64,000 bases of DNA, taken from NCBI GenBank assembly GCA_035084275.1, contig CM068745.1:84506001-84570000 (forward strand), in the 5' to 3' direction. Of the stretch, positions 3,199-54,802 are shown one piece after another (position 1 is the stretch's first letter; each line of letters opens with the position of its first letter). Below the pieces are notes generated by a model. The model worked only from the letters and a program-made list of their open reading frames with translations, ran no database searches and was not told the origin of the DNA. The position numbers and the translations under genes are program-made. This DNA is from Hydrolagus colliei (taxonomy: Eukaryota).

Positions 3199-3302
3199 AT
3201 GCTGTCGAAATGTCCCTGACTGACCCCAAACTCTGCTACATTTTGGATGGAATTCTTTTTGTCTATGGGATTGTAGTCACTGCATTCTACCTTAGATTGA
3301 GG
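3199..3302 (+). CDS. CD247: CD3-zeta exon 2 (short ectodomain + TM): (x)DAVEMSLTDPKLCYILDGILFVYGIVVTAFYLRLR
   Basis: Flanked by ctgacAG / GTaagt; 104 nt, phase 1 to 0; DPKLCYILDG motif with the dimer Cys and TM Asp of zeta chains. Confidence 0.97.
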
Positions 3303-3936: not shown

Positions 3937-4005
3937 TTTAGCAAAGCAAAGAGCAAACCTGGAGATGCCGCTGGGAATGCACCAGACACAGAGGACCCGT
4001 ATCAG
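3937..4005 (+). CDS. CD247: CD3-zeta exon 3: FSKAKSKPGDAAGNAPDTEDPYQ
   Basis: ttgttctcgcAG / GTgagt; 69 nt, phase 0-0; ends in first Tyr of ITAM1. Confidence 0.93.
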
Positions 4006-4413: not shown

Positions 4414-4788
4414 TAATAATAATAATAATAATCCTTGCATTGGATATAGTGCTTTCCATATCTTCTAGACAACAACAAAATTACACTTGTATATTTCACG
4501 TCAGGAGGACGTCACAAAGCGCTTCACAGAACATACTGTAAACTGAATTGACTGTATATTCATGGGCGAATCGCGGCAGCCAATTGCGCACAGCAGCGTC
4601 CCCCCCACAAACATGTCTGTGGATTGAAATGACCGATTTATTATGTTTTTCTCTTGGCTTTGCGGCCAGAAGCAATATTATTAGGCGCGTGTAGCAAGGA
4701 AACTTGCCAAAGCTGTTGCCCTGCTGGGAATTGAATTGGATTGCCCTGCTTGTAAGGCGAGCGCTCTAACTACTGAGCTACAGGGCTC
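4414..4788 (-). mobile_element. Full-length SINE with an L2 tail inside its own tail
   Basis: Reverse complement of the SINE consensus; L2-type tail at about 4470-4512. Confidence 0.9.
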
Positions 4789-5466: not shown

Positions 5467-5553
5467 GCCCTGCAGAATCAGGATAAGGATCAGTATTCAA
5501 GTCTTGCCTTTGACCAGGGAGGCCGAGACGCGGAGGCTGGAACTGGAAAGCGG
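5467..5553 (+). CDS. CD247: CD3-zeta exon 4: ALQNQDKDQYSSLAFDQGGRDAEAGTGKR
   Basis: ctctacAG / GTaatt; 87 nt; completes ITAM1 YQAL-x7-YSSL. Confidence 0.93.
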
Positions 5554-10144: not shown

Positions 10145-10192
10145 AACCGAAGGAGGAGAGATGATGCTGCCAATGCGGATCCCACTTATACT
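10145..10192 (+). CDS. CD247: CD3-zeta exon 5: NRRRRDDAANADPTYT
   Basis: Long pyrimidine tract ..gatcAG / GTaagt; 48 nt; basic stretch then first Tyr of ITAM2. Confidence 0.9.
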
Positions 10193-11252: not shown

Positions 11253-11309
11253 AAACTGAATCCCAAGAACAAGAGTGAAGCATATGGTGAACTGAGACAG
11301 AATCAGAAG
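11253..11309 (+). CDS. CD247: CD3-zeta exon 6: KLNPKNKSEAYGELRQNQK
   Basis: ttttgtAG / GTatga; 57 nt; completes ITAM2 YTKL-x8-YGEL. Confidence 0.93.
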
Positions 11310-11645: not shown

Positions 11646-11684
11646 CAGCCACGAAGAGGCAAAGGAGGGAGTGACATTTACCAG
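11646..11684 (+). CDS. CD247: CD3-zeta exon 7: (Q)PRRGKGGSDIYQ
   Basis: ctacctcAG(cAG) / GTagga; 39 or 36 nt; RRGKG motif typical of zeta. Confidence 0.93.
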
Positions 11685-12957
11685 GTAGGAAATGAGCTGT
11701 TTAGATACATGATTGGATCTGCTGGGTGCAAGGAAAGGACACCGGGACTACGCTACTCAAATAAGCAAGGTTCCTTTGCCTGTTGAAGGGCGGTGATGGA
11801 TGTTTTGTGGACCAGTGGTTCAGCGACTTTCCAGCAAGCAGCAGAAAGCAAATTCCCTTTAGAAAGGTTTAGAAAGGCAAGAGTTTCTGTTCCCAAAACC
11901 CACCCCTGAAACAACTACTTTTCCCCTGAATGGACAGCAAAGGTCTGGTCTACAGTAATTTGGTTCCCATGGTTACTAAAAGCCAAAGCTGGAAAGTAAC
12001 AAAACCCTTAATGCTGACCATAAATTATTGCACAGGCCAAATTAAAGCCATCTCTGCAATTGTTCTTCCATTTGCTCGAATGATCAAAGGAGAATTCTTT
12101 TCTAGCGTGTACTGAAGCCGCACAGACCTGCATAATAGATGATATTCTCCACTTTCCAAGCACGGTGAATTCCCATTCAGGAACCACTTTACTCAAACAG
12201 TCAGATTGTGACAATTATTTAGCGCAAATTATTCCAGGTTCGTTTCAATAATTCATAGACCGACCGGGTGTTGTGATTCGCCTCTAACCATAGACCTCAA
12301 CCAGAAATGACACTCGGCTCCGTCTCATTCCTGAGCAGCACTGAGCCCACCGTGTCTCGTGTGCGAGGAAAATGTCAGAAAGTGTACAATGTCTAATGCA
12401 GATTACGCCACGGCAACTCACTGGATGATCGCTGTCTAAAACTGCCCTGACCCCGGGGTACCTCTTAGTCAAAAGAAATGGCATCGTCACTGAAGCTTTT
12501 CATCATTGCTTCCTACCTCTTCTCCGTGTGGGAGAGAGTGCGAAATGCAATCAGCATTGAAGCAATAATATGAGAGACTATATTACGTGCAGGGGAGAGG
12601 GGTGGGGTGGGGGGGAAGGTGAGGTGGGGGGGTGGGATGGGGCGGGGAGTGGAGGGGGAATTGATATTGATCACTGATGACAATCCTTGCATACGAGATA
12701 GTGCCTTAAGAGGTCGTCAAAATGTCTCAATGAGATCTGTTAGGATACTGCTGTAAAACGTGGTGACGGTTTATTTTGAAGGCGAGTGCAGAAGTGAGTT
12801 TGCGCACAGCAGTGTCACACAATCAGCAACGACACGAATCAGCAGTTTTCTGTATTGGTTTGTCGGCCCGGACACCGGGAGAAACACCTTTCTAAATAAT
12901 ATATAATAATCTTTCCATGGGGGTGTTTAATGTCCACCTGAATACAGTACATAACAA

Positions 12958-13168
12958 ATGATCCTTGCCTTTGATATAGCGCCTTATCAGGTCTTCTAGA
13001 CATCTCAAAAGCGCTTCACAGAATATACTGCAAAGTGAACAGGCTGTACATTTGTGGGTAAAACACGGCAGCCAATGGCGCTCAGCGGTAACCCACAAAC
13101 AGTTGTGGATTGAATGACCAAATTATTATTGCTTTGTTTTTTGTCAGGGATTATTGTTAGGCATATGG
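12958..13168 (-). mobile_element. SINE 3' two-thirds, ending about 38 nt before CD247 exon 8 (a more decayed piece lies at about 12681-12840)
   Basis: atccttgc.tttgatatagcgc..gcgcttcacagaatatactg..tggattgaatgacc. Confidence 0.85.
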
Positions 13169-13206: not shown

Positions 13207-13284
13207 GGACTGAGCTCCGCTACACAAGATACCTATGACCGCCTGCAAATGCAGCCACTGCCGCCCCCTCCTCCTCGTCACTGA
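13207..13284 (+). CDS. CD247: CD3-zeta exon 8 (last coding): GLSSATQDTYDRLQMQPLPPPPPRH*
   Basis: tttttgcAG acceptor; completes ITAM3 YQGL-x7-YDRL; TGA at 13282-13284. Confidence 0.96.
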   Translation, partial: GLSSATQDTYDRLQMQPLPPPPPRH

Positions 13285-14742
13285 GATTCTGAGAACATTG
13301 TGGAAATATCGAGATGACCAACAATGGAAAAAGCTTTCATCGACTCAATTTCACCGGGACGAGAAGTCAATACTACTCGAGAAAAACATCCATACCAATG
13401 TCACCAGTGTTTGCATTCGCTAGGAAATCAGTTGTGTCCAGTTGTAGAAGGGTTTGTTTTCCAACTCGCAGTATCGTTCTGTGCCAAATTCTGTGGGCGT
13501 CCTTGCCCCCCGCTGTATCATAATATCGCTGATTTTGATGTGACTTGATCAAGATGAGGCAGGGGTTGCCTTGAATGTTTAAAATCTATTTCAAATATTG
13601 CTTTAGCATTTTTTGTATAAAGTCGTGATATAATGCAATGCTACTTCAGGCCCCCAAAATGGATGTAACTTTTAAAAGTAATAATAACAAAAATACAAAA
13701 ACCTGTAGATATACTTACAGTACATACTTTCAAACAGCCTCTGACAGAGCAACCTGGAATCAGAAAACAGTATTGGTTACAATCGTACCAATATGGCTAT
13801 TCATTGAAAGCAAAATGAGATGCGGTGTGAAAAGGTAAATTTGGATAGCGAATTACGGCAATAACAATAGAGGCAAGGAACACATTAAAATGTTGCAGAT
13901 AAGATCTTTTATAGTTGTACAAAATATAACCAACAAATAGTTTACCTCAGCTGTACATAATTTATTGCTACGCCCGAAGACTGGTTTTGAGAAAACCTCT
14001 GTGCAAAAAGTTGAGACTTCAGTACTGCGTGATGCTACTTATCAAAACTCCTATGCCTTCTGTGTGTATGTCTTTTTTATTATTCCACTAAAGAAACAAA
14101 TTACTTGGGAGTGAACATGATCAATCCCGGAAAGCTCTCCGCATCATACATAATAGAAGTGAATACAAGAACGCAGATAAACTAGAATCATTATATATAC
14201 GCTCTTGAGCAAAAAGGCTCCTGAAAGCATTACCAGAAAGCTTTTAAACGTGGGAAGCTTTTAAACGTGGGAAGTATTTATTTTACTCGACGGCCGGTGG
14301 CACTAAAAGCACCAAATTCCTCGGATTCAAATCCTCAGCGATAATTTTTAAATTCACACAATAGAGCTCACTGGTTACATGCTCGGCTTTACAATGAACT
14401 TGCAAAATAGTAATATTCTACCCATTATTTCTCACTTCGCAATTCATACGAAATTGACAAGTAGTTTTTTTTAAAAAATAAATCTTATTTTAATAATACA
14501 ACCCAGCCAGTGTTTTGAAGGTGCACTTATTCTTAAGTGTTGTTTCTGCATTATATGCCAATTTATACCACTGTCTCCTACACATTCAATGTGTCTCCCT
14601 GCATAACTTGAACAAACGTAACGGTTATTTGGCTTATCTGAAACAGTCATTCATTTCATCCGTGTTACACTACGGATAAACAATGATTGAATTAATCCAT
14701 CACATGTTCATCCAGCTTTTGTTTCTCCTTGTGGGAATTCTT

Positions 14743-16369: not shown

Positions 16370-16994
16370 AGTTTGCAGGTATAGCAAACAACTAGGAAGG
16401 CTAATGGCACGTTGGCGTTCATCGCAAAAGGGTTGGAGTACAAAAGTAGGGAAGTCTTGGTGCAACTGTATAGTCTTGGTGAGACCGCACCTAGAATATT
16501 GTGTGCAGTTTTGGTCTCCTAATCTAAGAAAGGACATACTCGCCTTAGAGGGGATGCATTGACCTTTGAGGACATGTTAAGTAAACTAGGCTAATATTCT
16601 CTAGAATATAGATTCAGAGGTGATCTTACAGAAATCTATAAGATTTTTCTATGGCAAGAATAGACAGTGTGAGACTGTTTCCCCTGGTTGGAGAATCTAA
16701 AATCAGGGGTCAGTCTCAAGATTAAGGGTCAGCCTTTTCAAACTGAGTTAAGGAAACATTTCTTCACTGAGAGGGCAGTGAATTTATGGAATTCTCTACC
16801 CCAGAAGGCTGTCGATGCTCAATCCTTGAACATATTCAAGACTGAGATTGATAGTATTCTAAAGGAGGGATTAAGGGAGATAGGGATAGGGCGGGTAAAT
16901 GAAATTAGGTTAGAAGATCAGCCGTGATCTTATTAAATGGCGGGGCAGGCAGGAGGCCGAATGGCCTACTCCTGCTCCTATTTCCTGTGTTCTT
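16370..16994 (+). mobile_element. CR1 LINE 3' fragment
   Basis: [15 protein letters not shown]-like segment, RKHFFTERAVNLWNSLPQKAV, tail ccgaatggcctactcctgctcct. Confidence 0.92.
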
Positions 16995-17010
16995 AATAGA
17001 TTTTACTCAA

Positions 17011-17112
17011 ATTAATAATTCTTGCACTTGATATAGCACTGTATCAAGTCATTGAGACGTCTCAAAGTGATTCACGGAATATACCGCAAAGTGAATCGAC
17101 TGTACATTTTGT
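17011..17112 (-). mobile_element. SINE tail fragment
   Basis: ttcttgcacttgatatagcac..gagacgtctcaaag..aaagtgaatcgactgtac. Confidence 0.8.
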
Positions 17113-17734
17113 AATTTAAATTATTGTGTTCAGGCATTCAAACCGTTAAATTATACCTTCAATTTGAATGTGTTTCTCCCTTTCAGAAGGAAAGAAAGCT
17201 CCCTTCATGCTTGATCGGTTGAATCTTGGCTGTGCATTCATGGTTCAACCTTTAACACACAGTGGATTTGGTAATACAAAATGAGTAGAATTTAAGACAA
17301 GACGTATAACTTATCATTTCTGTGGAGGACACTATTGTATTTTATCCCCAGCCAGTCAGCTAACAGCCACATTTCAGCAATTGAAGTAGAAATCCCCGCA
17401 ATCCTCACGACCCAAGTTGAAAATAAGAAACATACTCACTGATCAGTTCTTTCCAAATTTGCTCAAATGGGGTCTACGTTGCTACCGGTTTCTGGATTGT
17501 GAAAAACGATTTTTTGTCGACAATAAACCACCACCGTCATTTACATTATAATCAAATACAACAGAATAGTGACACGAGGTAGCTGTACACAATACGATTA
17601 TTTTAAAGTCATTTTTATGTGAAATGAACTGAAAGGTCAACTAATCGCTATGTGATAAGTCTGTAGAAACTAAATTGACTGCAGAGAGGGGGAGAGAGAG
17701 AGAGAGAGAAACAGGAAATAACGGTTTCTCGTCA

Positions 17735-20700
17735 GCATTTGAAGTCAGATTTTTAATGAACAAGACGTCATTACAAAAATGAATACAAAATGATTAGATA
17801 AAATGACCACATTACAATACAAAAAATCTAGCTGCAATGGAATTCTCTCATGGCAGTTCTTCAAGACAGTTTTATCTGCAGTGACTCACTGTACAATGAA
17901 TATGAATTTGAAAAGAACGTTAAAAAGAGTACCTTAATGCAGACAGAAGCAAAATTGTTAAAGTTGCATTTTTAATACAATTGAGTTAGTATTCCATTGA
18001 TTAACAATAACTATCGCTGTGTATCTGGCTTGATAATAAATTAGGAAAATAAGATTTACTTGGGAATAGATTTTTTTTAAATTAAGGGGTTGGGGGGAAT
18101 AAATTAACACTTCTATGCTCAAATATTTATCCAATGTACAGCAGACCAGGCAAGTAGCCATTAGCATGACTTCAAAACCAGACACTATCGTATGTTAGTC
18201 TGAGAAAATGTGCAGTCATTTATTATCCATTTAAAAAAAAAAACATTTTTCTTTAAAAATCACAAGATAACCGTCACATTTTCACAGGAAAGCTTGCTCG
18301 CTTATTTATACTCTTCACCAGCTAGTTTTGGAGCAGTTTGTTTCATTTTCTGTGGTATGTGTATTCAAGCTCCTAGTTCCAATTCTAAATAGCTACTCAT
18401 CGTCTTCCATTGATTACTTTTCTAAGTGAAGCAATATGGGAAGCGCTCCATCCCGTCGAATAACAAACTACATTTATACAGGGCCTTTCACATCTTAAGG
18501 ACATCTCAAGGCTCTGGGTGCTGTTACCTTGACAAGTCAATTTTTTAAAAAAAATTGAGAATTCAATCAAAAGTTAAAAGATGAAATAGTAACTAGAAAG
18601 CACATAAAAGTGTTGTTGAAAAAACGGAAGTTACAATTTGGTAAATGGCTGTAGTATGACCAAAAGATATTTTGTCCATGAAATCTTCCACAAACTCCCA
18701 ACTTTGAGCTCAATAGTGCTGCTATTTACACTCGGATTAGATTAGTGGAAATTTGCATCTCCCCCACTGATTCGAATTATACATCGAAATTGTTCAACCT
18801 CTTTGAACGTTCCATTAATCGTTAACTTTTTTTTTAAAAAGTAAAAAATGTGATAGAATAGCATCGTTAAAATGTCGGTTAGGGATCACCTTGGCTTTCC
18901 TATTTGGTAACACTTAAAAAACTTACAAACTGCTTCAAAGTTGATGCTGTTCCAAAATATAGGGGGGGCAACAATCGTTCAAATGCTCAACCACTAATGA
19001 AGAGCTAAAATGTGCATTTTGATGAGCAATTTCTAGCTTGCGAGCCAGGAATTCTAATCCATTTTTCATGGTTATCAGTAGTATATTACAAGTCTCTTAA
19101 ACCTGCAAAAATTCATTTCAGTGGTTGTGGTTAAAAATTGGGTTTAAGGATTGAGGATGTGCAACTTTTTAAAAAAAAAAATAATAATAATTTTGATTGA
19201 AAAAACTAAAATGTGCAGCCAGGTCATGAAATCAGTAAACTAAGGAAGGGCTAAATATTCAGCAACAGAAATAACAAAAACACCATCAAATGTCTAAATT
19301 TGCCAAAGTGTAAAATTTAATATCCTGAAAGACTAGTTCTTAATTACAACTTTCCAATGGTTATTCGGTTAATCTTTGTACTTGAGCTAGAAACAATACT
19401 GTATATTTAATGTAAGTTTGTATGGTTATACCAGAACACAGCAATATACAAATCAATGCTTAACAATAATGCCTTACTGTTGCAATGTGTCAGTATACAA
19501 ATTCCAATGATGTGTGCATTCACACCGCAGTTTTATCGTTGGAATTTTTTTTTCAAACAACACACAACTTAATGTCACATTCCTGCTCACAACGCAAGGG
19601 TCGGAGCCATTTTAAGGTTTCCATCACCACTCTTTTATATTAAAAAAACATGCCTTTTATTGGTATGAAAAAATTCACAGTAAAACAATGCACAGCTGAA
19701 CACGACTTAAACTGAAATTGCTGTAATGGTGATAAACAAGACAAACTGCCGTGTTGATGTAACAATTCTGAATATTGGTGCTTCAAGAAGACTTCAGCGA
19801 AAGAAATCTGTAAGGTATTTGAAGTAATACAATTTGTTGACGTAAAGAGGTACACAGTAATTACTCGACTTAGCTTACAATGTTCTTTTCACTCCTCTCC
19901 AGTCCTCACTAGTCAGTTAATAGCTATCAAATGGATAAAATCATTGTAGCTTACATTTTTTTAATTAGACATGTTTGTTATGTTGCTTGCAAATCTAGTG
20001 CTGGTATTGATTTAAAACCACAATGACCATAAGCTATTTGGCAAAGGAAATCAATGTTTTTAATTTATGTAGACTTGTGAGACTAAACATTTGAATCATA
20101 TGAACAGTATTATAAAGTACTTTCCCTTAAACTAGTTAATTTCAGCTACAAATTGTATTACTTCCACTGCATGATTCACTGAATATTTCTCACGCCAACA
20201 TTGTTTAAAACTTGAGTGTTGTGTATTTTTTTGGGGGAAAAAATAGCAGAAATGTGTGGTAATGCTATAGGAAAACAGTCAAACTTTCCTTGAGAATTGT
20301 AAAATCACCACCCGAACCCCCAACTCTCCTGTTCAATCATAAGTCATTTGTTTTGTTTTAAATGTTAAGTTTAACATAAATACTCAAGATTCTCTACAAA
20401 CAACATTGCGAAACAAACATGTCCCAATAGTTAGGGGGCAGCAACTAGAAAATAGATCTGTTTATAGATCTGTTGAGAAAACATCCATTTTAGAGGTCAT
20501 TTTGATAAAGACACTGTATGGGAGCAATGGTGAGGTGAGGATCTGAATTACCAAAACACCACAGCTGCCAGAACACCAAAAGGTTTAATAGATGCTCAAG
20601 ATCAAATTAAATAATAAAAATGCAGCACAGTAGAGTGAAATTTGAATCACTTATTAAGGCCATGTGAAAGGACTGTTTGAACCAAATTAAAACTATTCTT

Positions 20701-23700
20701 GTAGCTGCCTTTGCATGCTGAATGAAGATCTATACACTTCCAAATAGAAAGAAAACAATTTAGAATGACAAGACTTTTACCGAAATTCCTCTGCAAAACC
20801 TCTCGTGCATATTAACGGTCTAACTGGAGGAATTGGGATTACGTACCCAGAGAGAGAAACAAGTTTTGTTGTCGAACGACAGGGAGTTTTAGTCTGCTAG
20901 ATCTTCGTGTCAGGTCATTCTTCAGTTACGTGATCCTTTATATCATTCCGTATACAATTATCATCAAGGAATTTGACTGCTTATTTCCCATGCAAAACAT
21001 TAAAGAGAATATCTCTATGATCCCGCTTTTGTGAATTGTGAGAAGCCTGCGAGATGCCTAGTCTCTACCGAAGCGTTATTCAATCACAACGTTTCACTTT
21101 TTGGGTGTGGGAATGTTTAAAGGGGCTATAGGTGTGTTTTATAAAAGGGACGAACGTGACCAATTAATGAAGACCAGTGTGCACAACCTTGAAAAAAATC
21201 CATCAAAGAGCAATCTCAAATTCCATGAGTTTGAAGCCTCAAGGAAGCTACCTTTCTGAGATAAGCTTCAAACCCTTTACGCATCACATAATCACAGGCA
21301 GCTGTCTTTGTTACCAAAAATCAGAATTTGTGTTAAGACTGGTTTAAAAACCTTCGGACCCCTATTCAGTGCAATTATTGTTCTGTAACGTGCTTGATAC
21401 CCAGTGTATACAGTGGAATCAACAAAGCAGGTGTCACATTTATGAAACTGGGAAAGAAAGAATTTGACTGCTCACATAATCCACCCAGTGTGCTGATTTT
21501 TGCAGTATGCTATGACTTTCCCCGAGTTCTGAAAATATTGGAATGAAATTCTTTGTTCTTTCCATTCAATACCGCCATTCAAATAATCGCAACTATCTTT
21601 GCGGATAGCTATGTTGGTGAAAACAGGATAAGTTTCACACCAATCAATTATGAAAGCAATATATCAACGGGTTGAGGTTCAGTGATTCACATCAAAGCTA
21701 GCATTGCAGCCAATTTCAGCTAATAGCTCATGTGTTTTTTTTGGTGCTGCGGGAACTTTAGTTTTTCACATTTACACCTTGCCCTGCAACATCAAGCTTT
21801 CGGTCTGCCGTTCTGAAAGCTGTGCTGGTAACCTTTAACTTTGTTGCAGCTGACTGGTCAGTTTTGGGGGGGGGGCTTTCTGAAACACTGCTTGGGATCC
21901 CAGCTCTACTCAAAAGTAGCAGCATTGATAGTGCAAAATATGCAAGTAGAACAAAGAGCCTCTGTAATGAATCTTTTAAGAAGTAGGGATATACTGTAGT
22001 AATCTTAATGGTAAATTAAACCCAAACTACAAAGTTGCCAGCACACGTCCGCTGATGGTATGAGCACATCTGACACTTGTAGAAGCAACATTTGCACTGG
22101 TAAAGGTCCGTCATCTCCAACCATCTTCCACAAGTTTGATTAAAAACCAGCATGTGTGTGTACACGCTCAATTATGGTGTTGTATTAAGGTGCACTGGAT
22201 ACAGGGGCGTCCGCAGGTTACTGTGATGCAGTCTTATTATATAAGGAATGTACCACCTTGTGTGGGAACAGTTCAATCCAGTTGAGGACTTTTACATTTG
22301 CACCCACTGAGCTGTTGCACATCTTCACTCAGATAGAATGAATGGGTTAATAAATTATGAAATTTACATTGCTTAGTAACAGTATCCCTCTTTTCTTGGT
22401 CCTACACAAAACGCATGTAAATGACCACCAAAAATCATATCTGCACACCATTTTAAATCAACGATAGCCGCAGTTAAAAATTTCAAATCAAAATTAAAAG
22501 TTTACAGAAATCGTTGCATAATGTAGTTACCGGGCTAACGTTTCAGAAGAGAAATGTTTACAGAAGTACGTTGTAGAATGGTCACACGTAGACTCTTGTT
22601 TTGTTGTTCTGGCCATCCACTGAAATGCACTTAAGAAAGTACCAAGTTCTCTTCCGACTTCTACCTTCTCCTTTAAAAGGCAGTTCAGTGGCAGTCTGAT
22701 CAGACAATGAAGAAGAATACCCTGAATCAAATTGACCAATATAAAATGCAGAAGGGGAAATAACCATACAATATTCATTTTGTAGATCTGCTCTAAAAAT
22801 ATGTAATATATGTCACCCGTTCCCAAAAACATTTTATCGTTGGTCTGTTGAAAATTGTAGGATTCATTTCTTCCTACTGAGGATACTCAAAATTATTGTG
22901 CTATGAATGAATGAGCTGGAATTTGCTTTTCATATTTAAAAAAACTCACGTAGATTTTGTTCATGCAGATATACATTTTTCATACATAAAAAGGAATACT
23001 GTATTGAAAAACTGCATTAAAAAAACACCTTCCAATAAATAGGGAGGTCACACACTTAAAGAACGTAAGCCTGCGGACGTCCAAAACTGGATATGTACAC
23101 TTGTAACTATGAACAACTAGGCAGTGAAAAACAGTTATGTTCTCACACACAAAGACACACCCAAAAACATACAAAAATACTATATCTTAAACTACCAAGT
23201 AAGACAATTTAATTTTTTTTTATCTCATGCCATGATTTAAGAGCAATACACTGAAACGAACAAGGATTTGACAACAAAAAAAAACTTTTATCCCAGAAAT
23301 ATACCAAAATATACATCTAAGCTTTGGAATTACTGAGGTTAGACTAATGCCTGCTGGGTAATTGCCTTTAATACACAATTCTAAGGTTGCGAAGAAGAAA
23401 TAAATCTTTGGTATCTGCATTAGGCGAATGTTAACATTTGGATTTTGCTTTGGGATAGAGCTTGTATGATCCTACAACCCCCCATGTAGTACTCAAAAAA
23501 AAATCACTGGACACAAAAAAATCCATCTTTCTCCACACAAAAGTACTCTGGAGTTTCTATCTAGCACAAGGTTGAGGAATATAATGCATAGTCGCACAGT
23601 GGTATTATGAAAAGAAGATGAAACCTTTGTAAGCAAGCTGCAACCTTTATAGTCCATTTTTCTTTTGCAAAATGAAACGGCAGCTTCCAGCCACTTCCAG

Positions 23701-26700
23701 CCAGTTTTGAAGAGCACCTCAGTGTGTATTAATCCATATCACCCAGCCCACAAAGTGATGCCCCAAAGAGGAGCCAATCCTACCACTGCGATGGTCCCCA
23801 GTCGTTTGACCAATCAAATAACACATTGGGCTCCACTTTCAGTTGCTCCTCTGAGTCTTCAGAGGACAGTGCAAAGCACAATTCTTTTACTTTCCAACTC
23901 TCGTCACGGTAAGCAATTCACACTTTTGAAATAAGATTAGTGTAGGACTGAAGACTTTTCTTTAAAAAAAATTATTTTTAGCTCATACAATCATTAGTAA
24001 GTCTTTGGTTTTATCAGCACAATGTAAGGTTGCTGGCATGTAGCAAAAGCACTGAGCATGGCAGGAACAGCCATCACTAACATTTACATTCAGAGAATGA
24101 GTGCTATTCTCAGGGTATTCTTAATGATGGGCATAATACCCGACCCGATCTGATACAAGATTGTCAAAGTTGAACAGCATTTTGTTAGTAACAATCACTA
24201 TTTGGCTACTGATACGAATGTGCAATAGTCTGGACTTGGAATCAAATACATCTGAGGGAGGTGAAGCCCATGGAGAATTCCTCCACTAAGATGACTGTAA
24301 ATGGGCACATTAGGAGAGTTTAAATGTGTTTCCCAGAGGACACAAAAAAGCACATTTAATTTGCAACATTTTTTTGCATTCAAGTGTGGCCTGTGGAGTT
24401 GCCAGCGAAACGGTGAAATTCCGATTGGAAATAGAAACAATAACTCGAGTGTTGGGCTGAGGGCCCGAGAATTTAGTTATTCAGCTGCTTTTTCGAACAA
24501 GTCGGTAAAAACTCAGCGAGTCAAATAATCAGCCTGTAATTTCATCTCTCATCTAAACAGGATTAGCAGTTTGGCTAACTTTAGAAGAGGGGTGTGGGGG
24601 GGTAATGATGCGAATGACGAAGGGAAAGGAAATTAAAAGAGTTAAGGAATTGCAATATGCCCATTGTTTAAGAGTTTAGTTGTCAAATTTGACTGTTGTT
24701 ATTCTCCTGCTATGCCAGTGATGATACATGCCAGATTTTTTTTCAAAAAGTACAGTCAGTGGGCAGGTTCAGCCACTCTGAGGGGGAGAAGATTAAAGTG
24801 AGTTACTCAGTCACGAGTTAAGAAATGAGGTATACAACAGCTCCTGTACCCACAGCAAATGGTAATGACCACCCATTTTAAGCAAGAGGAAGAAAATGAA
24901 ATAGTCATGCCTAGTGACTGACTCGGGACAGTACCAAGTTCATTCCAATTAGAAGTTTGGCAAGATCCTCGAATAAGGGAACAAAAAAAATCGGCACGCG
25001 AGGATCATTTCCCCCTTTTCCCCAGAATTTTTCATCCACCAAAGTTCCGTGAAATTTTGCTGCACTGATTAGCGAAATCCAACTTCAGATAAACACCATG
25101 GCAGAGGGCACAATCAACTCTCACGGCAGCTTGCAAGGCTACCCCACACCCCCTTTTTCTCTCCTTGGTGACAACTGGAGTCGGACTCCAACACTGTATC
25201 ACAATATAGTTGTTAAGATAGTATGTACACCATGATTCGGGGTATCCCAATCTACTGATAAAGGGGGACACTGGTTAACTAGCCACTTATACTGCAGGCT
25301 TGGCATTTCTTTACTTGAGTGACAAGTCTCTTCCAAACTCAGTTGAAATAATTTGTCACTCTCAATTTCCGTGGGGTATAATTAATCTTTCATTTTTTTT
25401 AAAAAAAACGGTTGAAATTGAAACAGTGATTGTAGTTTTTGCTGAAAAAAATCAGTTCTATAATAAAAAAAAGCAGCGATACTTTGATTGATCTATGCCA
25501 GACATGATACATTTACATCATACGGAGTAAAAAAAAGGCTAACCTGTAACCTGTGTGGGTATTTACAGCAGACATGAGAATAAATTTTGTTATGAGATTT
25601 CATTTTCTTCCTCAGATTTCCTTCAATCATTAATTTACTGTACAACCTGATCTACGCCTTTGTTCCAAGTGCTCTCCTTACACAACTGAAATGGATTCAT
25701 CAAGATTTTTTTTTTTTCTTTTTACATCTTTCTCTCCAAGACAACATAGCTCTTTACAGAAAAGAGTCCCTAAAATGAGAATCAGTTCTACCTCCACAAA
25801 CCACTTGGGCAAAAGTCTTCTGGTTAAATCACCACCTTATTTTCATAATTCTCAATTTAGTCTGTTGCTAATTTACTTACTTCAATTCAATATTTCACAC
25901 ATTCAACGACTGAGCCATCGGATTGATTGATTTATCCCCTCCCCTTAATCCCTTCATTATTGTAGCAGTACATTGGCCCCGAACAGTTTTATGTGATTAT
26001 AATTTTGAGATGAAAGCAGAGGTTGCTTTTGTAGATTTGATGAATTCTTTGGAACAGGTGTGAGGACTAATAGACAAAATATGATTTCAGAACAGAGAAC
26101 ATAGGCCTGCTCAAAAGGGAGCCAAGGAAATACAAAGAGTTAATACTGGTTCATAAGGCTGCACAAACTCAGCAGCTAACCCTAACAATCAGTCAACGGA
26201 AATTTATTTTGCTTTCTTCGACAGCTTCCCTATGAATACAGGATGGAAGCGAAAGCAATAGGAATTTTGAAAATACCCATTGCTGTTTGCATTTACCATT
26301 AAATGACGTGCACGACTGACACCTATGAGCCGCTCATCTACTTTATGTGCTTATTTTACATCTGTATAAAACTTTGACCAGCAGTACAAATTGCTATTCC
26401 ATACCTCAGAGGTTTCCAAGGGAATAAATAGTGAAGTGTTTGAAATTCCCTTTCATTTAACTGAACATGAAAACACAGAAATGTGATTACAGCGCAGTAA
26501 TAGAAATGATATGTTCAGAGTATAATTGTAGTAGTTTTTCAGGCTCCGGCATCGCCACCATTTATATACGTATCCATTTTATAAGAAAACGCTGGGAGTG
26601 TGTCAAAGAAAGCATAATAAGAAAAAAAATGGCTCAGGCGTTCATTGCTTCCTTAAATTGGAGTAAGCTGCAACACTTTCATCGGGCGTTTCACTTAACG

Positions 26701-29700
26701 TATCTAGAGCTGGGCGATGTTTTGCAAAAAAAACGCATAAGGAATGAACAAAAAATGTCAGAACATTTCAAGTTTCTTCGCACGACGTGGCCTTATGGGG
26801 GAGGGCAAAAGAATGAAAATGCTTTATGGCAGACTGGTTACTATAGCAACACAGCTACGATCTATCCTCCAAATCTTTTCGTCCCGTTACCTCATATGGT
26901 ATTCAAACCCGTGGAGCAATTTAGTGGCTGGTAATTTAAAAAAATAAAAAAAAAGTCCAATAGCAATGAATGTCCAGATTCAATCGGGTGTGTGGAATAA
27001 AGGGTATGATGGCATAAAGGGTATGATGGCTGTTCTTTGTTTTTTGTAAATCCTGTTGTCTGAACAAAATGAAAATAGTAACAGGAGTAGTCTAGCCCAA
27101 GAAGAACTAAATCTCCTGATGGCAGCCTGTAAAATTACACAAGCGGTGAAACATTTTATCGTTAGGGCTATCATGCCTTCATAACCGGTTAACTCACTTG
27201 AAATTTGTTGGGAGTAGCCATGGGAGAAGAACGATGAAAAACAAAACAAGATCAAATATGTTGTTTGAAACTGGATTTTTTTTTGTTGAGTGCGCAGATA
27301 TTGGAAATGAACCAAATTAAAGTTGCCTGCCAAAAATAAACATTCACTTAAAAATCCTTAGAAACTCAACTTTTTTTGTTCATCCTTATACAAGTTGCAA
27401 TGTAAAGCAGTTTGGTAGGCATTGCTCCAATATCACCTTCGTGAGAATAAATGGATGGGTATTTTTGTTGTCTAGCTCCATCAGTCTTCAGTGGAGAAGT
27501 TTAGTAAGATATTGTATCGCCCAACCCTAGTAGTATCCTGAATTGACCATACATAGCATTAACACTGACCAACATTATCAGTCAAGCATAAATGCTACAC
27601 TATTATTGATCTATGTACTGGTAATGATTTTACTGCTAATGATAAAGGGCACGGAGGTGTGGGTAGACTGTAACATTGCTGCAGCCTTCAACCAGAAGAT
27701 TTAATTGCCCGCAGCACTGTCCAGTCTTCAAATAACTTTGGCCAATAGCGCTGAACTAATAATGAAAATATATCAAACAGGTGACACTAATTACGGCAGC
27801 CACCTGCCTCGGAAAGCAGCCCTTCGAACTGAGTGAGTGGAAACATTTAAGGTGTGCAATATAATTAAATTCTCGATATTTTACCGATGTGGCGAATAAA
27901 ATTACATTTAAATGGTGAAAACACAACAATATTCCAAAATATAATCAGTTACTTTGAGGGTTGCATTAAATTTTAAATGAGAAGGCAAAACAAATGAAGC
28001 CCAAAACCCCAATTCACAGAAGAAATAGCCAAAGATCTTGCAGGTAAAAAAAACACAGATTAACTGTGCTGGTGGCAATTATATCCAGATGAGGTTACCA
28101 ACACAGTTACTATTTGGCATAAAGCTGCAATCAATTACCAGGACTTTTTGAACTGATTCCCTGTATGACTCTGATGCAACAAGATAAAAACATGAAGAAA
28201 AATATATTGCACACCCTAATATTTACCATTGAAAAGTCAAACCATGCCACCGATGATTCAAAACCACATCTGAACCCAATATGTGGGTCTAAAATGTCTG
28301 CTGAAACCATCTATGGTGCACCCCCTAGTTTGGTGACTTCTGGTCACAACTAAACAAACCGCAGCAAAAATTCTAATTCCGCCAACTGGATGCAAAAGGG
28401 AGAGCTATGATAGTCATATCATTTACTCCCAGACATCAACCAAATGCCCGGGGCCAACCTCAACCACTTATCAATACAACTGTTCTTTGATCAGTCAAGC
28501 AGGTGCAAGGAGCAGGATATATTTTTGGTCTAGATTGAATTATTTAGCATTGCTATCAACAACAATAATAATACGAAGTTAAAAAATTACTCAGCTATTA
28601 GTGTGACAAACACTACATTCAGTTTACAACACAAATAAAACATTTTCACTTTCTCCTTTTAGTTTTAGAAAACATCATTTCTATAGTGGAACCCTCCCCA
28701 TCCCAGATACTGTTGATCTAACCCCTTTCTAACAAATGGCCAGTGAAACAGTACTGTACTGTTCAGAAATGTAGAAGAGCTACAATACAAATCTTGACTA
28801 GGTTAAAACAATGAGATGAGGCATGCTGAAACTCAGGCCACGTTATAAATTGATCGAGTTGCGAAAGAAGGAGTTTCCTTTGGCAAATAGAATCACAAAG
28901 TGATTTGACTTTTTTCTTTCTTTAGGAATCGACATCACCCTTTTTTTTTATTAAAAGAACTAAACCCATAACCAAAAATTTTGTTTCCTAAATTTTTTTT
29001 ATATATATATACAGAATATCACCCAAGAATCAACATCTACATTCTAAATCTACAATCATATCCAACAGGAAAAGTTTTTGCGTTTGCAAAGCAAGCCTGT
29101 AATTGCTAAGCGATGCTGAGGTATTTTTTTTAATATGGAAAGATTGCAATGATGAAAAATTTTGCTCAGGTTCTACTTATAGGGTCCAAGACCTATCTTG
29201 TTACTTCCCAATGAAAATGTTTGCACAGCTAATGTTTCTTAGAAAATTAAAGTTCATAAATGCAGTGGATAATATTGGCAAACAATGCTGCAATGTGATG
29301 AATTAAACAGATGGGCAATGTCGGACTTTGAATCCTTCATTTACATAGGGTTCACTCAGGAACCATTCAATACAACATAGTTGTATTCAGCTGAAAGGCC
29401 AAATAGTGCGACTGCTACATGAAGCTCAATCGAAGTTCAGCGTTGCAATGGGCCAGGTTAAGTTTCACCCTCTCATTTCAAAGGTGGGAGTATTCTGGCA
29501 TGGTGCTCATGAATTTGTTACAGTTGTAATAAAAAGTATTGGTGACAACCAGTAGAATAGAGAAATAAAGATTATTTCTTCATTTTTACTCCTGGGTCAG
29601 ATTAATGAATCAAACCAAAACATGCATAGCACTGTTCTTGCGTGTCAATGGATTTTGATAGAATTTGTTCTCTAAAGCAAGTTTTTAGTTCAACAGTGCT

Positions 29701-32700: not shown

Positions 32701-34643
32701 CAGCCAGTTTCAATTGCCCAATGAAAACTGGCTACACCAGACTCTTGGCTACTTTGCAACAACATGAAGTCCAGGTTTGAAGATTCCTTACCTGCAAAAC
32801 TATACTTAAGTAGAAAATAGCAAGTTTTCCTTATATGAACAGTAGCAACTAAATTACTGATGCCTATTAACTGCACTCATGCAAACAATGTCATTGGTAC
32901 AGCAGCTAGGTAAAACTGACTTTGGTTCAAGCTTTAATAGCTGGCCATATTTGGTAGGCAGCCATATTCATTTTGTTTGCAGTTTGGTAGTGTAAGAGTA
33001 CCAGAACTGCAATTTTTATGCCTTGAAAAGGAGATGATTACAGTTTCTGACAATGGGGAAAAAAGGTGTCTGTCTTTTTTTTGAGTTGAATCAATTGATT
33101 TAATTGCACCTGGTTGCTGTTACTTCCACAAAGTACCGCACCGGTTACACAGGTTTCAATGGCAAAATAATTTTAATAGCCAGTTAGCTAAAGCCAATAT
33201 ATGCGTCGTCTAAATATAGCACTAAGGTGGCTCCTATATCCAGCAATAGAGCACAGGGAAATTCAGATAAACAGATAACTGTTTTTAGCATATTATTTGT
33301 TATGTGATCAGTTATGGGTTCATAATGAATCACCGTATGCACAATTTCACCCCAAAATTGTACCCCTCCATGGGCAATCGGGTGTTAAGTCCATTTGTAA
33401 ATGATGATTCAAGCTGTCGTTAATAGCTTGGTTATCAGTACCACCGTGGCTGCCTCTTTCAGAAAAATGACAAACACCATTTTACTCCATATGAACTGCA
33501 AATGCGCTCCTCCAGTCCTTTAATATTTGGTTTCAATACGGTGCACGCTTACAGCAATGGGTCAAGCCATACTGTGCATACTGTAAGCCGCATGTCTCAA
33601 AATAACCCTATTTTCCAATACAGACGAACAAACTCCAAACTGAGCCAACATTAGATATGTTATGAGGCTCTAAGGAAACGTACATTATCCAGTTTCTATA
33701 AGTAAAGCGGTTTCTGGAAACTGGATAATCAATTTTCCTATCAGAAGCCTATATCGCCTTTTTATGATTGGCCTAGTTTGGATTGCGGTTTGCTCATTAC
33801 TACCATCTTCCACAATGATTCCGACTGATTCTCTAGTATTTGAGTCGACAAAAACTTCACAGGGTAACGTATGATCCACATACGATAAAGTCTCCATTTC
33901 CAGTTGTTCTGCCATGTGGATCAGTATTCCTGGCGGCATCAAATCTGTTGTTATTATCCAACCACCACGTTTAGGTAGGACAGACATTCTGATCTTAAAA
34001 ACAAGTATCATTTGAAAAACCACCAGTCTGTGAATTTTTGTCTAGACTTATCTATCCTTGCATCTTTCCTACAAATTAACCGACAGTAAACCACATTATA
34101 CAAACGGTGCATAAATCTACAGTGTACCCGACAAAAAAACCAACCTTTTTCTTTGAAAGGAAGCCATTCCAAGAGACGTTAGCAAGAAAAAAACCCATAA
34201 AAACCTAATTTTCTTAACGGTATACACAAGAAGAAAACAAATGCACAAGTACAGGCCTGCCTAAACTGTACCAGTTAAAGAAACCCATGCTATTTATACA
34301 TGATATAAACACCTTTATGAAACAAAAAGGCCTGTACAACAGACCCAATTAAAATAAACACACAATTAAAAAAAGAACTAATAAAATAGATACTAAGAGG
34401 AGACAGAACCCTTGCCTATGCATTGTTAATGACTCCTATATTGTTACGACCGTCTGAAACGATAAATATTCACGTGTTTTCTTTTTTGGTAGAAGTCTTT
34501 TTTTTGTCATATGTGACACAATCCTGAAAAACAAGCAGGTTAAAAAAAATTAGGCAAAAATATCAAGTTTTGCTTTTTGCTGGAAGCAGCCAAATACACA
34601 TCCCATCGCTGGATCGGACGACCCCCACTCCGGGAATCGCATC
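17735..34643 (-). other. POU2F1: Putative very long POU2F1 3' UTR (distal end uncertain)
   Basis: Directly follows stop; AT-rich; no retroelement seen 18520-34640; candidate signals ATTAAA 23213-23208, AATAAA 18224-18219, ATTAAA 17757-17752. Confidence 0.5.
18462..18515 (-). mobile_element. Decayed L2 3' tail (last recognisable repeat before the repeat-free block)
   Basis: aacaaactacatttatacagggcctttcacatc..ggacatctcaagg resembles 48109-48160. Confidence 0.65.
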
Positions 34644-34942
34644 TCACTGAGCCTTGGTGGTGCTGGTGGCCCCACCTGCCGAGGTCACGGTGAACGAAGG
34701 GTTCTGACTGGAATCAGCCGACATAGAGGTCATCTGGAGACTGGCGGTGTGTCCGGTGGCCCCGGCAGCAGAGACCAGGCTTACGGCTGGGTTGCTGGTG
34801 AGCAGGGATAGGTTCTGCGGGTTCAAAAAAAGTGGGCCGGTCACGATGTTTGGATGGCCCCCCTGGTGAGCTGCGTTGGCAAACAATAGATTTCCACTGG
34901 CATCAAACGAGGTTATAGGAAGGGACCCACTGGATGCAAGTG
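34644..34942 (-). CDS. POU2F1: Oct-1 last coding exon: [23 protein letters not shown]...[12 protein letters not shown]...TTKAQ*
   Basis: ttctcctcAG acceptor; TGA at 34646-34644; C-terminal KAQ as in Oct-1. Confidence 0.97.
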
Positions 34943-35058
34943 CTGAGGAGAAAAGAAAGAAAACAAATGAGAATTTAACAAAAAAATAACAAATGCTCTG
35001 AATTGAAGAATGCATTCTTGTACCTTCAAAGAAATGTTGCTAATGCGATAGTAATCCA

Positions 35059-35275
35059 TGCATTTGATTTAGCACATTATCACGTCTCAAAGCGCTTCAC
35101 AGAACACACAACAAATCACAATTATATTTATAGAGCGCCTTTCACGTCGGGAGGATGTCCCAAGGCGCTGGAATATACTGTAAAGTGAACCGGCAGTATG
35201 TTTTGTGGGCGAAACGCGGCAGCCAACTGTGCACAGCAGTGTCCCACAAACAATCATGGATTGAGTGACCAATAT
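35059..35275 (-). mobile_element. SINE 3' part with nested L2 (family A) tail at about 35108-35170
   Basis: SINE tail, then atttatagagcgcctttcacgtcgggaggatgtcccaaggcgc, then SINE body resumes. Confidence 0.85.
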
Positions 35276-35707
35276 ATGTACTACTTTTTGCTGCAGGTAA
35301 GCTGCAGTGCAATGCATCTTCAGCAAAACATCGATGCAAAATGAATAGTGGATTTGGTGAAAATGATTTAAAATGAGTCTGTCTGAAAGTGATCAAAAAG
35401 TTATGCTATCATCCTCTCGTCTTATACACTGGAATGTGTAAATTCCAGAATAAGATACTATTATCAGTACAGTGTGACATCACAAACCCACTATTTGTAG
35501 CTACAATTCGGTTATAAGATGGTTGTGTCATTCACTGTGCGCACATTAAAATAGAGGTGATTGGGTCTCTGCCATCATCACTTCCTGTACCCTGTTGTAG
35601 CTACAGCACACAGCAAGTTAAATTGGGGGCAACCTCATGGCATGCAACAACAAAATTACATGTGGACTGTGTAGCACTTTTCATACTGTGAGGTTGTTCC
35701 AAGGCGC

Positions 35708-39033: not shown

Positions 39034-39102
39034 CTAAAAGATCAGTGACACGTGAGAATTCTAATGTGAAATTTGATTTGTTTTTTCAAAAAAGAATTCT
39101 GA

Positions 39103-39395
39103 TAATATTTCTTGCATTTGATACAGTTCTTTTCGTGTCTTCTAGACGTCTCAAAGCGCTTCACGGAATATACTGTAAAGTGAATTGACTGTATATATGT
39201 GGGCGAAACGTGGCAGCCAATTGTGCACAGCAGTGTCCCCCACAACCAGTTGTGGATTGAAATGACCAATTTTTTTTGTGTGGGATTATTGTTAGTCATG
39301 TGGAGTAAGAAAACTTGCCCAAGGTTTCACCCTGATTGGAATTGAACCCGGGTCTCTCGCTTGTAAGACGAGTGCTCTAGCCACTGAGCTACCTC
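39103..39395 (-). mobile_element. Full-length tRNA-derived SINE (short variant)
   Basis: Head, body and tail all recognisable. Confidence 0.92.
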
Positions 39396-39747
39396 CACGA
39401 CTGATGATAAGATATAAGAATAATTTACTTGAGATGAAGAAAAAGAAAACAGTTGCTTGATTCAGATTTTTTTCAAGAATTAACAATGCGATATCACCTT
39501 GGCTCCTTCACCGATTTTAAAATCGCAGTCATTTCACACAGACGCAGATCAAAGGCAAATTATGTTAAGACTATGCAAAATGTAGTGAAGAAAAACACAA
39601 TTACTGCTGTCACTTTACTTAATTCTAAAATGGATTAAAACATAATCGTCAATCAATCAAGCAACAACGTAAGAACTTTTGTTCGAACAACGTCACACGA
39701 TTTCTTAAGCTGTCATCTATAGTATGTTTAAGTATCCAACAACGTAC

Positions 39748-47958: not shown

Positions 47959-48092
47959 CTGGCAAGAAACATGAAGAAAGAAAGAATTTGAACTTTAACA
48001 TTGTGCTTTAGAAGTAGACTTTACATCACTAGAATCAAGTACCTTGGGAGTATCACGACTAAAATCTACCAATCATTGGTGAATTCAGATAC

Positions 48093-50140
48093 TGCAACAA
48101 CAACAACAACAAATTACATTTATAGAGCGCCTTTCACGTCGGGAGGACGTCCCAAGGCGTTGCACAGGAGGTGTGTGACCCGAGCTGGGAGGGGAATGTT
48201 TGGGAAGTGGTGAAACACTAAGGGGAGGTAAAAGAGTTCGGGGTGGAACAGAAGGCACGATCGAAAAGGAAAGTCTTCAAACCGGCCTTGAAAGAGGAAA
48301 GGGAAGAGAGGAAACGGAGGGATTGAGGGATGGCATTCCAAAGGGTGGGAGCGGAGAAACTGAAAGCCCGGCCTCCGATGGTGGGGCGGTTCGGGCGGGG
48401 GGCTTGGAGCAGGCCAAGTCCTGATGAACGGAGGGTCCGGATGGGCGTGTAGGGGGAGAGTAGATTGGTTAAGTAGGGTGGGGCAAGACCGTGTAAGGCC
48501 TTGTAGGTGAGGACGAGGATCTTGAACTCGATCCTCTGGAGGATGGGGAGCCAGTGGAGATGGGCGAGGGTGGGGAGAGAATTTCCGTAGTCCAGCCGTG
48601 AGGTGATGTACGCGTGCACGAGTGTTTCGGCAGCGTGGGGGGTAAGATAGTTGCAGAGCCTGGCAATGTTGCGCAGGTGGAAATAGGCGGTGCCGGTCAA
48701 GGCGCGGATGTGGGGGAGGAAGGAAAGTTTTTGATCGAACATGATGCCGAGGTTCCTGATTGGCTTTGTGAGGTGAGAGTGCAGCCTTGGATGTTGAGGC
48801 TGGCAGCGCCCGATGTGCGGAGGCGCTGGCTTGAGCCAATCAGGAGGGCCTCGGTCTTACTCACGTACAATTGCAAAAAGTTGTCCCTCGTCCACGACTC
48901 GATGTCGGACAGACATGCTGTCAGAACATCGATCGTCTGGGGGTTGAGGGATGAGGCAGAAAGGTACAACTGGGTGTCGTCCGCATACATGTGGAAATTT
49001 ACCCCATGTTTGCGGATAACGTCGCCCAGAGGGAGCGTGTAAAGGGTGAAAAGGAGGGGACCGAGGACAGAGCCCTGGGGGACGCCGTGAGAAACTGTGC
49101 GGGGGTTTGAAGAAAAACCATTGGAGGAAACAAAGTGTAAACGGTGGGTCAAATAAGAATGGAACCAGTCAAGGACTGTGCCTTGAAGGTTGAGGTGGGA
49201 GGAAAGACGTTGGAGGAGGACGGTGTGATCGACTGTGTCGAACGCAGCAGACAGGTCAAGGAGGACGAGGAGGCAGAGGGAGCCCTGGTCACAGGCGGTT
49301 AGGATGTCATTTGTGACCTTGACCAGGGCAGTTTCTGTGCTGTGGATAGTGCGGAAACCTGATTGGAGGGGTTCAAGAAGTGAGTGAGTTGAAAGGAAAG
49401 AGCGGAGCTGGGAGGCAACCACTCTTTCAAGGACCTTGGATAGAAACGGGAGGTTGGAGATGGGTCGATAGCTTGATGGTTGCGACGCATCAAGGGAGGG
49501 TTTCTTCAGGATAGGGGTGATGGTGGCTGTTTTAAGGGAGGTGGGGACGGTACCTGAGGAGAGGGAAAGGTTAATGGTGTCAGAAATGAGCGGGGCTAAC
49601 AAATGGAGCTGGGTGCGGAGGAGGGGGGTGGGGATGGGGTCCAATGAGCTTGTGATGGGTTTCATGGAGGTGATTGTTTTTGTGACTGAAAGCGGGGTGG
49701 TGGGGTTGAAAGTGTGAAATGGGGGGTGAGTAGGGGTTGAGGTAGCTGATGAGGGCGCGGAGGTGGAGGAGTGGTGGGGGGAGGAAACCGCAGAGCGGAT
49801 TTTCTCAATTTTGGACTCGAGGAAGTCCAGCATCTCCTCACAACGAACGTTTGAGGAGAGGATCTGCGAGGTGAGGCGGGGGGGGGCGGAGGAGCTGGTT
49901 GTTGGTGGCGAAGAGGAGGCGGTGGTTGTCCTTCGCTTCCACGATTATCCTGGAGTAGAAGGCTGATTTGGCGGTGGTTAGGGCGGAGCGGTAAAATTTG
50001 ATGCGGTCCAGCCAGATTTGCCGGTGGACCGTGAGGCCAGATTTGAGCCAGGTGCGGTCAGCTGCTCTCACTTGGCTTTTGAGGGAACGGAGGTGAGTTG
50101 TGTACCACGGTGATGATCGGGAATGGGATTGCTGCAGGGT
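48093..50140 (-). mobile_element. 5'-truncated L2 LINE (about 2 kb) with reverse-transcriptase domain; frameshifted, non-functional
   Basis: [51 protein letters not shown]; 3' tail and (gtt)n; frameshifts near 49835 and 48740. Confidence 0.96.
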
Positions 50141-54560: not shown

Positions 54561-54802
54561 ATTTCTATGAAACAGTAAACAGTTTCTATGAAAAGGCAAC
54601 TCCTTGAATAATGTTTGCGTTCTTTGAGGGAAGAATTAATTTAATTCCATCGCATTTTCAAGCAGACCACATTTGATTTTTTTAAAACTATTAACTGGAA
54701 CACTCCGATCTATCCACCATTCCTCACTATGCTAATGCTAAGGTTGAGACATGTGTTAATCTAGGAACAAAACTGAATTGCAGTTAAAAGTCTCTAACTT
54801 AC

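Follow-up and report, generated by a model that had tools for sequence, protein, structure and literature searches.

Genes and candidate exon between CD247 and POU2F1

The window analysed here, a stretch of 64,000 nucleotides (nt) of the chimaera Hydrolagus colliei that contains no N, carries two genes in tail-to-tail arrangement: CD247, the gene for CD3-zeta, lies on the plus strand and POU2F1, the gene for Oct-1, on the minus strand, as found by tblastn with human and Callorhinchus CD3-zeta and with Oct-1 protein. Our work concerns the segment 23620-23934 between their coding regions, for which the initial annotation had proposed an element antisense to the putative 3' untranslated region (3'UTR) of POU2F1 that is ancestral to the alternative CD3-eta exon of mammals. 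Lerner et al. 1993 J Immunol 151:3152 and Clayton et al. 1991 PNAS 88:5202 are said to be the references for the mouse CD3-eta exon 9 of Cd247 and for its antisense overlap with Oct-1 (Pou2f1), and this overlap was reportedly published in 1993. Passages of PMC2195880 and PMC2119082 cite the eta/Oct-1 papers. The exons of the two genes that matter here are the following; the CD247 exons were located by tblastn with Callorhinchus CD3-zeta and by their splice contexts:

3199-3302, plus strand: CD247 exon
3937-4005, plus strand: CD247 exon
5467-5553, plus strand: CD247 exon
10145-10192, plus strand: CD247 exon
11253-11309, plus strand: CD247 exon
11646-11684, plus strand: CD247 exon 7, QPRRGKGGSDIYQ, which ends in ..DIYQ in phase 0 and holds the first tyrosine of the third immunoreceptor tyrosine-based activation motif (ITAM3)
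13207-13284, plus strand: coding part of CD247 exon 8, GLSSATQDTYDRLQMQPLPPPPPRH, with the TGA stop codon at 13282-13284 and the last ITAM3 tyrosine
34644-34919, minus strand: last coding exon of POU2F1, ending in ..TSTTKAQ with the stop codon at 34646-34644 (tblastn, translation, and blastn to the POU2F1 ends of the loci L001, L002 and L005)

The assembled CD247 exons have their best protein match in Callorhinchus milii, and the CD3-zeta proteins of cartilaginous fishes rank first. The Callorhinchus locus (L003) is colinear with the window. Base 1 of the window corresponds to position 50747 of L003, and CD247 exon 1, which encodes the signal peptide, lies outside the window, the Callorhinchus gene model beginning about 40 kb upstream of base 1. 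The earliest plus-strand poly(A) signals past the CD247 stop codon are found at 13884 and 14477; the CD247 poly(A) signals lie 0.6-2.7 kb past this codon and 7-9 kb upstream of the candidate splice site at 23701. The 3'UTR of POU2F1 extends from 34644 toward lower coordinates, and in L001, L002 and L005 the interval from CD247 to POU2F1 contains no called gene. Within the segment, the following features suggested an exon:

23653-23934, plus strand: open frame, in our view incidental, of 93 codons with a stop at 23932-23934; it contains the 77-codon tail that starts at 23701
23684-23703, no strand assigned: perfect 10-nt tandem repeat of CTTCCAGCCA (two units), the source of the SHFQ reading
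23699-23700, plus strand: AG, the sole plausible cryptic acceptor, with a pyrimidine fraction of 0.71 in the preceding tract and in a phase compatible with exon 7
23909-23914, plus strand: donor-like hexamer GTAAGC, absent in bony vertebrates, within the chondrichthyan-conserved stretch GTAAGCAATTCACAC..AAATAAGATTAGT.TAGGACTGAAGAC

All features listed in the initial annotation were found where it had placed them: a tract rich in T and C at 23653-23668, three AGs whose G lies at 23683, 23690 and 23700, the string tccAGCCACTTCCAGCCAGTT that translates to SSHFQPV in the frame of 23686 (23686-23706), and the donor-like site acg/GTAAGC with its G at 23909 (here and below, a slash marks a splice junction). 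The three tails that it had derived from the AGs, LPATSSQF followed by a stop, PLPASFEEHLSVY followed by a stop, and 77 amino acids beginning PVLKSTSV, are exact, and it had also given correctly the phase of exon 7 and the position of the last ITAM3 tyrosine in exon 8. The open frame is unremarkable, since 68 stop-to-stop frames of at least 94 codons exist in the window, eight of them in the non-coding span from 13.5 to 34.5 kb. The pentamer GTAAG occurs 15 times on the plus strand of the 21-kb intergenic/UTR span. As to the acceptors, poor tracts precede the AGs at 23682-83 and 23689-90, with pyrimidine fractions of 0.35 and 0.41 as compared to 0.71 at 23700, a value in the top 7% of the AGs in the span; the seven real CD247 acceptors have fractions of 0.65-0.88. 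The AG at 23699-23700 is kept in all species as part of a conserved motif.

Homology with the mammalian eta region

A query with mouse eta retrieved the eta-type products of the mouse (..GLYQDSHFQAVQFGN..), the naked mole-rat and the horseshoe bat (..GLYQDSHFQAVP..). In the loci of the bat (L001) and the mole-rat (L002), POU2F1 lies on the opposite strand, 8.6-9 kb past the end of the eta coding sequence. The species compared were mole-rat, bat, turtle, bowfin, little skate, Callorhinchus and a sauropsid-like host, which together with the window makes eight. The following blastn alignments cover the segment or its immediate surroundings:

23101-23701: mole-rat, L002 21052-21686, 72% identity, E 2e-95
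23101-23601: bat, L001, 74% identity, E 2e-85
23101-23754: bowfin, 73% identity, E 2e-112
23101-23616 and 23703-23779: turtle, 76-77% identity, E 9e-99 for the first span
22054-24294: little skate, 71% identity, E 0.0, bit score 1138
16992-24197: Callorhinchus, 84% identity overall and 93-99% around 23620-23934, E 0.0, bit score 7828

Three lines of evidence support the orthology of the segment with the mammalian eta region. First, the alignments that include the motif of the eta exon start span 520-700 columns with E values of 1e-85 to 1e-112, and the mammalian alignments come to an end where the eta-type exon is annotated (SHFQAV, L001 80747 and L002 21664). Second, the 24-nt motif and the start of the mammalian eta exon align without gaps, and this nucleotide resemblance is unique in the window and far above chance. 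Finally, exon 8 (13207-13284), the element at about 23680 and the POU2F1 stop codon (34644-46) follow each other in the same order in bat, mole-rat, turtle, bowfin, Callorhinchus and skate, and the conserved block described below lies downstream of CD247 exon 8 in every species compared. Alignments and position agree that the segment is orthologous and syntenic to the DNA from which mammals make the beginning of the CD3-eta exon, as the initial annotation had supposed. The similarity extends over hundreds of nucleotides, as compared to the approximately 18 nt that it had named as too short for homology, and the position is syntenic in the eight species.

It might be argued that an 18-mer similar to the eta start has arisen by chance, without any homology: PSHFQAD at 54647, in a POU2F1 intron, matches DSHFQAV at five of seven positions by chance and provides a yardstick for how weak the peptide match of SSHFQPV is when taken alone, and the register of this peptide is not the orthologous one. 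Since the motif is located inside long, syntenic and highly significant alignments in seven other species, this explanation is already refuted and retains virtually no probability.

The conserved sequence is organized in blocks of the putative POU2F1 3'UTR that can be followed from the segment up to the POU2F1 coding region:

23080-23610, minus strand: deeply conserved block of the distal POU2F1 3'UTR (blastn E 2e-85 to 2e-112 against bat, mole-rat, bowfin and turtle)
23292-23350, minus strand: 59-nt core CCCAGAAATATACCAAAATATACATCTAAGCTTTGGAATTACTGAGGTTAGACTAATGC, an exact string in the window, L001, L002, L003, L005, L006 and L007-9
23677-23779, minus strand: smaller conserved island with the orthologue of the eta exon start (23676-23699), the ACCTCAGTGTGTATTAAT..CACCCAGCCCACAAAG motif and the AGAGGAGCCAAT motif
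23940-24027, minus strand: next colinear UTR island, CTGAAGAC..TCATACAATCATTA..TCTTTGGTTTT (blastn, conservation profile)
24719-24850, minus strand: colinear conserved UTR block (blastn)
28500-29159, 32840-32958 and 34181-34600, minus strand: further colinear UTR blocks, reaching the POU2F1 stop codon (blastn)

The segment is located at the edge of a block of about 0.6 kb that consists of 23080-23610 and the island 23677-23779. The former part is 94-99% identical to Callorhinchus, and in 20-nt bins 39-100% of four bony-vertebrate sequences match per position, with the low of 39-50% at 23480-23559. The 59-nt core is identical in seven of the eight species (window, Callorhinchus, bowfin, turtle, sauropsid-like host, bat and naked mole-rat) and is found in all seven, with unchanged orientation, 2.8-10 kb past CD247 exon 8; the exact-string search for the core found none in the skate. 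Neither a structure nor a known RNA family accounts for this core. The contigs L007, L008 and L009 are the Joint Genome Institute (JGI) metagenome contigs Ga0065710, Ga0065711 and Ga0181612; they are animal host DNA, span the region from CD247 exon 8 to the POU2F1 3'UTR of one sauropsid-like species, and contain the block. The identity to Callorhinchus of 93-99% around the segment compares to about 75% in the CD247 introns and indicates strong constraint.

The mode of conservation is not that of a coding sequence. In the main block, the mismatch fractions against the four bony vertebrates are 0.264, 0.246 and 0.254 for the three positions modulo 3, i. e. there is no 3-nt periodicity, for which reason we rejected a coding exon on the minus strand. 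Moreover, the aligned sequences differ by indels of 10, 3, 2 and 1 nt. The non-periodic mismatches, the colinear blocks and the unconserved frame described below bear out the suspicion, voiced already in the initial annotation, that the sequence is conserved for the Oct-1 UTR and not for a protein.

Register and coding potential of the eta-like frame

The peptide SSHFQPV had been regarded as the counterpart of the mammalian DSHFQAV. In four MAFFT runs, the mammalian codons GAC AGC CAC TTC CAA GCA GTT (CCA) were placed opposite window positions 23676-23696 (23699), where the window has AAC GGC AGC TTC CAG CCA CTT CCA, so that 23676-23696 reads NGSFQPL. SSHFQPV is thus one repeat unit of 10 nt downstream of the orthologous codons, and the proposed correspondence is lost. 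Its His codon requires an ACTT of the window lineage where skate, Callorhinchus and the bony vertebrates have AGTT. Callorhinchus carries a single unit with a 10-nt deletion and reads AASS followed by a stop, or NGSFQLV, without SHFQ. From the upstream GGCAG/ACAGC (here the slash separates alternatives) to the anchor ACCTCAGTGTGTAT, skate and bowfin are as long as the window, with diverged units, and the spacing of 37 nt to this downstream anchor has no gap in any of the three. It follows that two units were present ancestrally and that 10 nt were lost in Callorhinchus. A duplication of 10 nt specific to the window on a single-unit ancestor was considered as well and rejected, because the 37-nt spacing of the skate equals that of window and bowfin and a deletion in Callorhinchus is simpler.

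The orthologous frame offers no exon, either. The caG/GAC acceptor of amniotes corresponds to tGA/AAC in the window (23674-23678), which has GA at 23674-75 and lacks the AG, and the orthologous frame reads NGSFQPLPASFEEHLSVY and stops after 18 codons at the TAA 23730-32 within a conserved TATTAAT. The CAG/GAC acceptor is present in turtle, the sauropsid host and mammals, and in none of bowfin and cartilaginous fishes. In the turtle (L006 95519) and the sauropsid-like host (L009 reverse strand, 12278), the acceptor is cacaacag/GAC and the sequence that follows reads DSLFQAV; in the turtle this frame is open for about 85 codons. Judging by these sequences, the potential for an eta-type exon may be older than the mammals.

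We next weighed a lineage-specific alternative terminal or penultimate CD247 exon, in which exon 7 is joined to 23701, exon 8 is skipped and a novel tail is added. For such an exon speak the phase 0 of exon 7, the pyrimidine fraction at the 23701 acceptor, the retention of the AG and the first approximately 18 codons (.VLKSTS.CINP..PAH) in Callorhinchus and skate, and the conservation of GTAAGC in chondrichthyans. However, the frame itself is not maintained: As compared to Callorhinchus, it shows three synonymous and eight non-synonymous changes, one nonsense change (CAG to TAG at 23860), a 3-nt indel, and the 10-nt indel at its 5' edge, and the share of synonymous changes equals the random expectation of 0.24. 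In skate and bowfin, the equivalent frame is shifted, differs in sequence and reaches a stop after 39 codons. The first approximately 18 residues that recur (..TS.CIN..PAH.) are a translated nucleotide island, which is conserved also where it is read in other frames, as in the sauropsid host, and in which most substitutions affect first or second codon positions. The product of exon 7 and the tail had no match in a collection of 5.8 billion proteins, and in a phmmer search of 1.84 billion representative proteins only two low-complexity repeat proteins matched the tail. In addition, the Callorhinchus zeta cluster lists only the isoforms X1 and X2 of CD247; X1 (175 amino acids) matches the zeta-type representative, and X2 (152 amino acids) is known by its listing and length only. 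The position of the CD247 poly(A) signals far upstream of the site argues against the exon, too. On this evidence from sequence comparison, the 23701 frame is evolving neutrally with respect to coding and is not kept by selection in related species, and we consider the exon very unlikely. Of the ancestral eta element proposed originally, homology and synteny have stood, whereas an eta-like exon in the chimaera has not: The acceptor AG is missing at the orthologous place, the frame is broken, and no protein in the databases searched carries the tail. Should chimaeras, and perhaps other cartilaginous fishes, nevertheless splice CD247 exon 7 to the AG at 23700, for which we see only a very slim chance, the resulting zeta variant would have lost the second ITAM3 tyrosine and gained a short, lineage-variable tail; mouse CD3-eta would then have an independently evolved functional counterpart that uses the same POU2F1 UTR sequence in antisense.

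The segment as a probable part of the distal POU2F1 3'UTR

The end of the conserved region provides a further clue to its nature. A minus-strand AATAAA or ATTAAA is found within about 30 nt of the end of the block in five bony vertebrates, namely bowfin, turtle, the sauropsid host, bat and mole-rat. In chondrichthyans, conservation runs on for about 5.4 kb past the bony-vertebrate end (22054-23100, 19061-19780 and 17707-18189, with up to 96% identity between the two chimaeras and 65-78% with the skate), and these stretches are not found in bony vertebrates. The extension is closed by a conserved minus-strand ATTAAA at 17752-17757, and similarity collapses beyond about 17750. These data suggest a POU2F1 3'UTR of about 17 kb in chondrichthyans or, alternatively, a separate minus-strand transcript.

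Conservation past the bony-vertebrate poly(A) site in cartilaginous fishes would also be expected of an element that acts at the DNA level between CD247 and POU2F1, such as an enhancer, an insulator or other conserved non-coding sequence that is not part of an mRNA, and the fact that neither RNA structure nor an RNA family was detected fits with this possibility. We regard it as unlikely, since the block stops next to minus-strand poly(A) hexamers in five bony vertebrates, the chondrichthyan extension ends at a conserved hexamer of the same kind after which conservation drops, and the blocks keep a colinear order that begins at the POU2F1 stop codon. Moreover, the mammalian POU2F1 mRNA has a 3'UTR of about 10 kb.

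Based on the colinear blocks from the stop codon and on the minus-strand poly(A) signals at the block end in bony vertebrates, we assign the segment to the POU2F1 3'UTR: with high probability, 23620-23934 is the antisense (plus) face of the distal part of this UTR, and the features on the CD247 strand are incidental. Several observations weigh against this assignment. At window positions 23100-23112, both chimaeras have CATAGTTACAAG and the skate has CATAGTTTTAAAAC in place of the hexamer (CATAATAAAAAAG-type) with which the block ends in bony vertebrates, so that in these species the assignment rests on colinearity and on the distal conserved ATTAAA. RNAalifold found no compensatory pairs on the minus strand of the block, and the search of 22000-25500 against Rfam gave no match at E <= 1. 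Finally, GTAAGC is conserved in all three chondrichthyans, and the AG at 23699-23700 is conserved and phase-compatible and has a decent pyrimidine tract, which leaves a small probability of cryptic or low-level splicing.

In the model that we propose, the POU2F1 3'UTR would be transcribed from the minus strand with 23620-23934 in its distal part. The 5' third of the segment (23677-23779) is one of several elements whose primary sequence has been conserved from the gnathostome ancestor onward, and the remainder is conserved only in cartilaginous fishes. Since neither an Rfam match nor compensatory pairs were found, the constraint looks like the recognition of primary sequence. Most likely, the elements act in the POU2F1 mRNA as sites for RNA-binding proteins or microRNAs, trans-acting factors that would control stability, translation or the choice of the 3' end. 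In amniotes, the same DNA has gained the CAG/GAC acceptor, and the mouse uses it as the alternative eta exon on the CD247 strand. The peptides shared by mammals, DSHFQAV and ..STQQSSQS.. (mammals read the AGAGGAGCCAAT motif as ..QQSSQS..), are translations of conserved UTR islands. In the chimaera, the acceptor-like AGs, the 77-codon frame and GTAAGC would be incidental, and SSHFQPV results from the 10-nt quasi-repeat.

The segment can be compared to three known systems: (i) Like mouse CD3-eta exon 9, it lies past zeta exon 8 and overlaps, on the opposite strand, the distal POU2F1 3'UTR; the nucleotides of the exon start are orthologous (ACAGCCACTTCCAAGCAGTTCCAG in mammals, ACGGCAGCTTCCAGCCACTTCCAG in the chimaera), and exon 7 ends in phase 0, so that skipping of exon 8 would drop the last ITAM3 tyrosine. 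In contrast to the mouse exon, the chimaera segment has no AG at the orthologous acceptor and its orthologous frame is stopped early; the long frame of the chimaera is another one that is not conserved, and SHFQ is shifted by one 10-nt unit. (ii) With the conserved, ultraconserved-type 3'UTR blocks of vertebrate genes for developmental transcription factors, it shares a length of hundreds of nucleotides with 70-100% identity from cartilaginous fishes to mammals, a run invariant in seven of the eight species (the 59-nt core), the lack of codon periodicity, and, in bony vertebrates, the end at a poly(A) signal. It differs in that the cartilaginous fishes lack the proximal poly(A) hexamer and have the longer conserved extension, and the function is here a putative one. 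(iii) As in the exonisation of antisense or non-coding sequence, the amniote CAG/GAC acceptor lies on pre-existing conserved UTR sequence, and the upstream pyrimidine-rich stretch can be aligned (TTTTTCTTTTGC in the chimaera, TTTTCTCAC in amniotes); in the chimaera, the step that makes the exon, an AG at the orthologous place, has not occurred.

The feature is ordinary and of an already known kind; what our work adds is the depth of the conservation, the distribution of the acceptor, and the finding that the peptide match is out of register. The comparison averts a mis-annotation, as the neat combination of acceptor, frame, donor and peptide match appears to be a by-product of a conserved UTR on the opposite strand. 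It also implies that the CD3-eta residues common to mammals are translated from POU2F1 3'UTR islands older than the divergence of cartilaginous from bony vertebrates, and that the eta exon required an AG which, among the species sampled, is seen only in amniotes.

Two further observations concern the window as a whole. Copies of an interspersed repeat of about 100-300 nt with 75-88% identity are present at 4494-4788, 12951-13162, 17013-17112, 35048-35289 and 39089-39416; many copies are found across the Callorhinchus CD247 locus, and the repeat is probably an element resembling short interspersed nuclear elements that is common to holocephalans. Between exons of POU2F1 that encode the POU domain, a GC-rich stretch of 2 kb (48001-50000) has a GC content of 0.55 and a G-skew of +0.42, in surroundings of about 0.38 GC.

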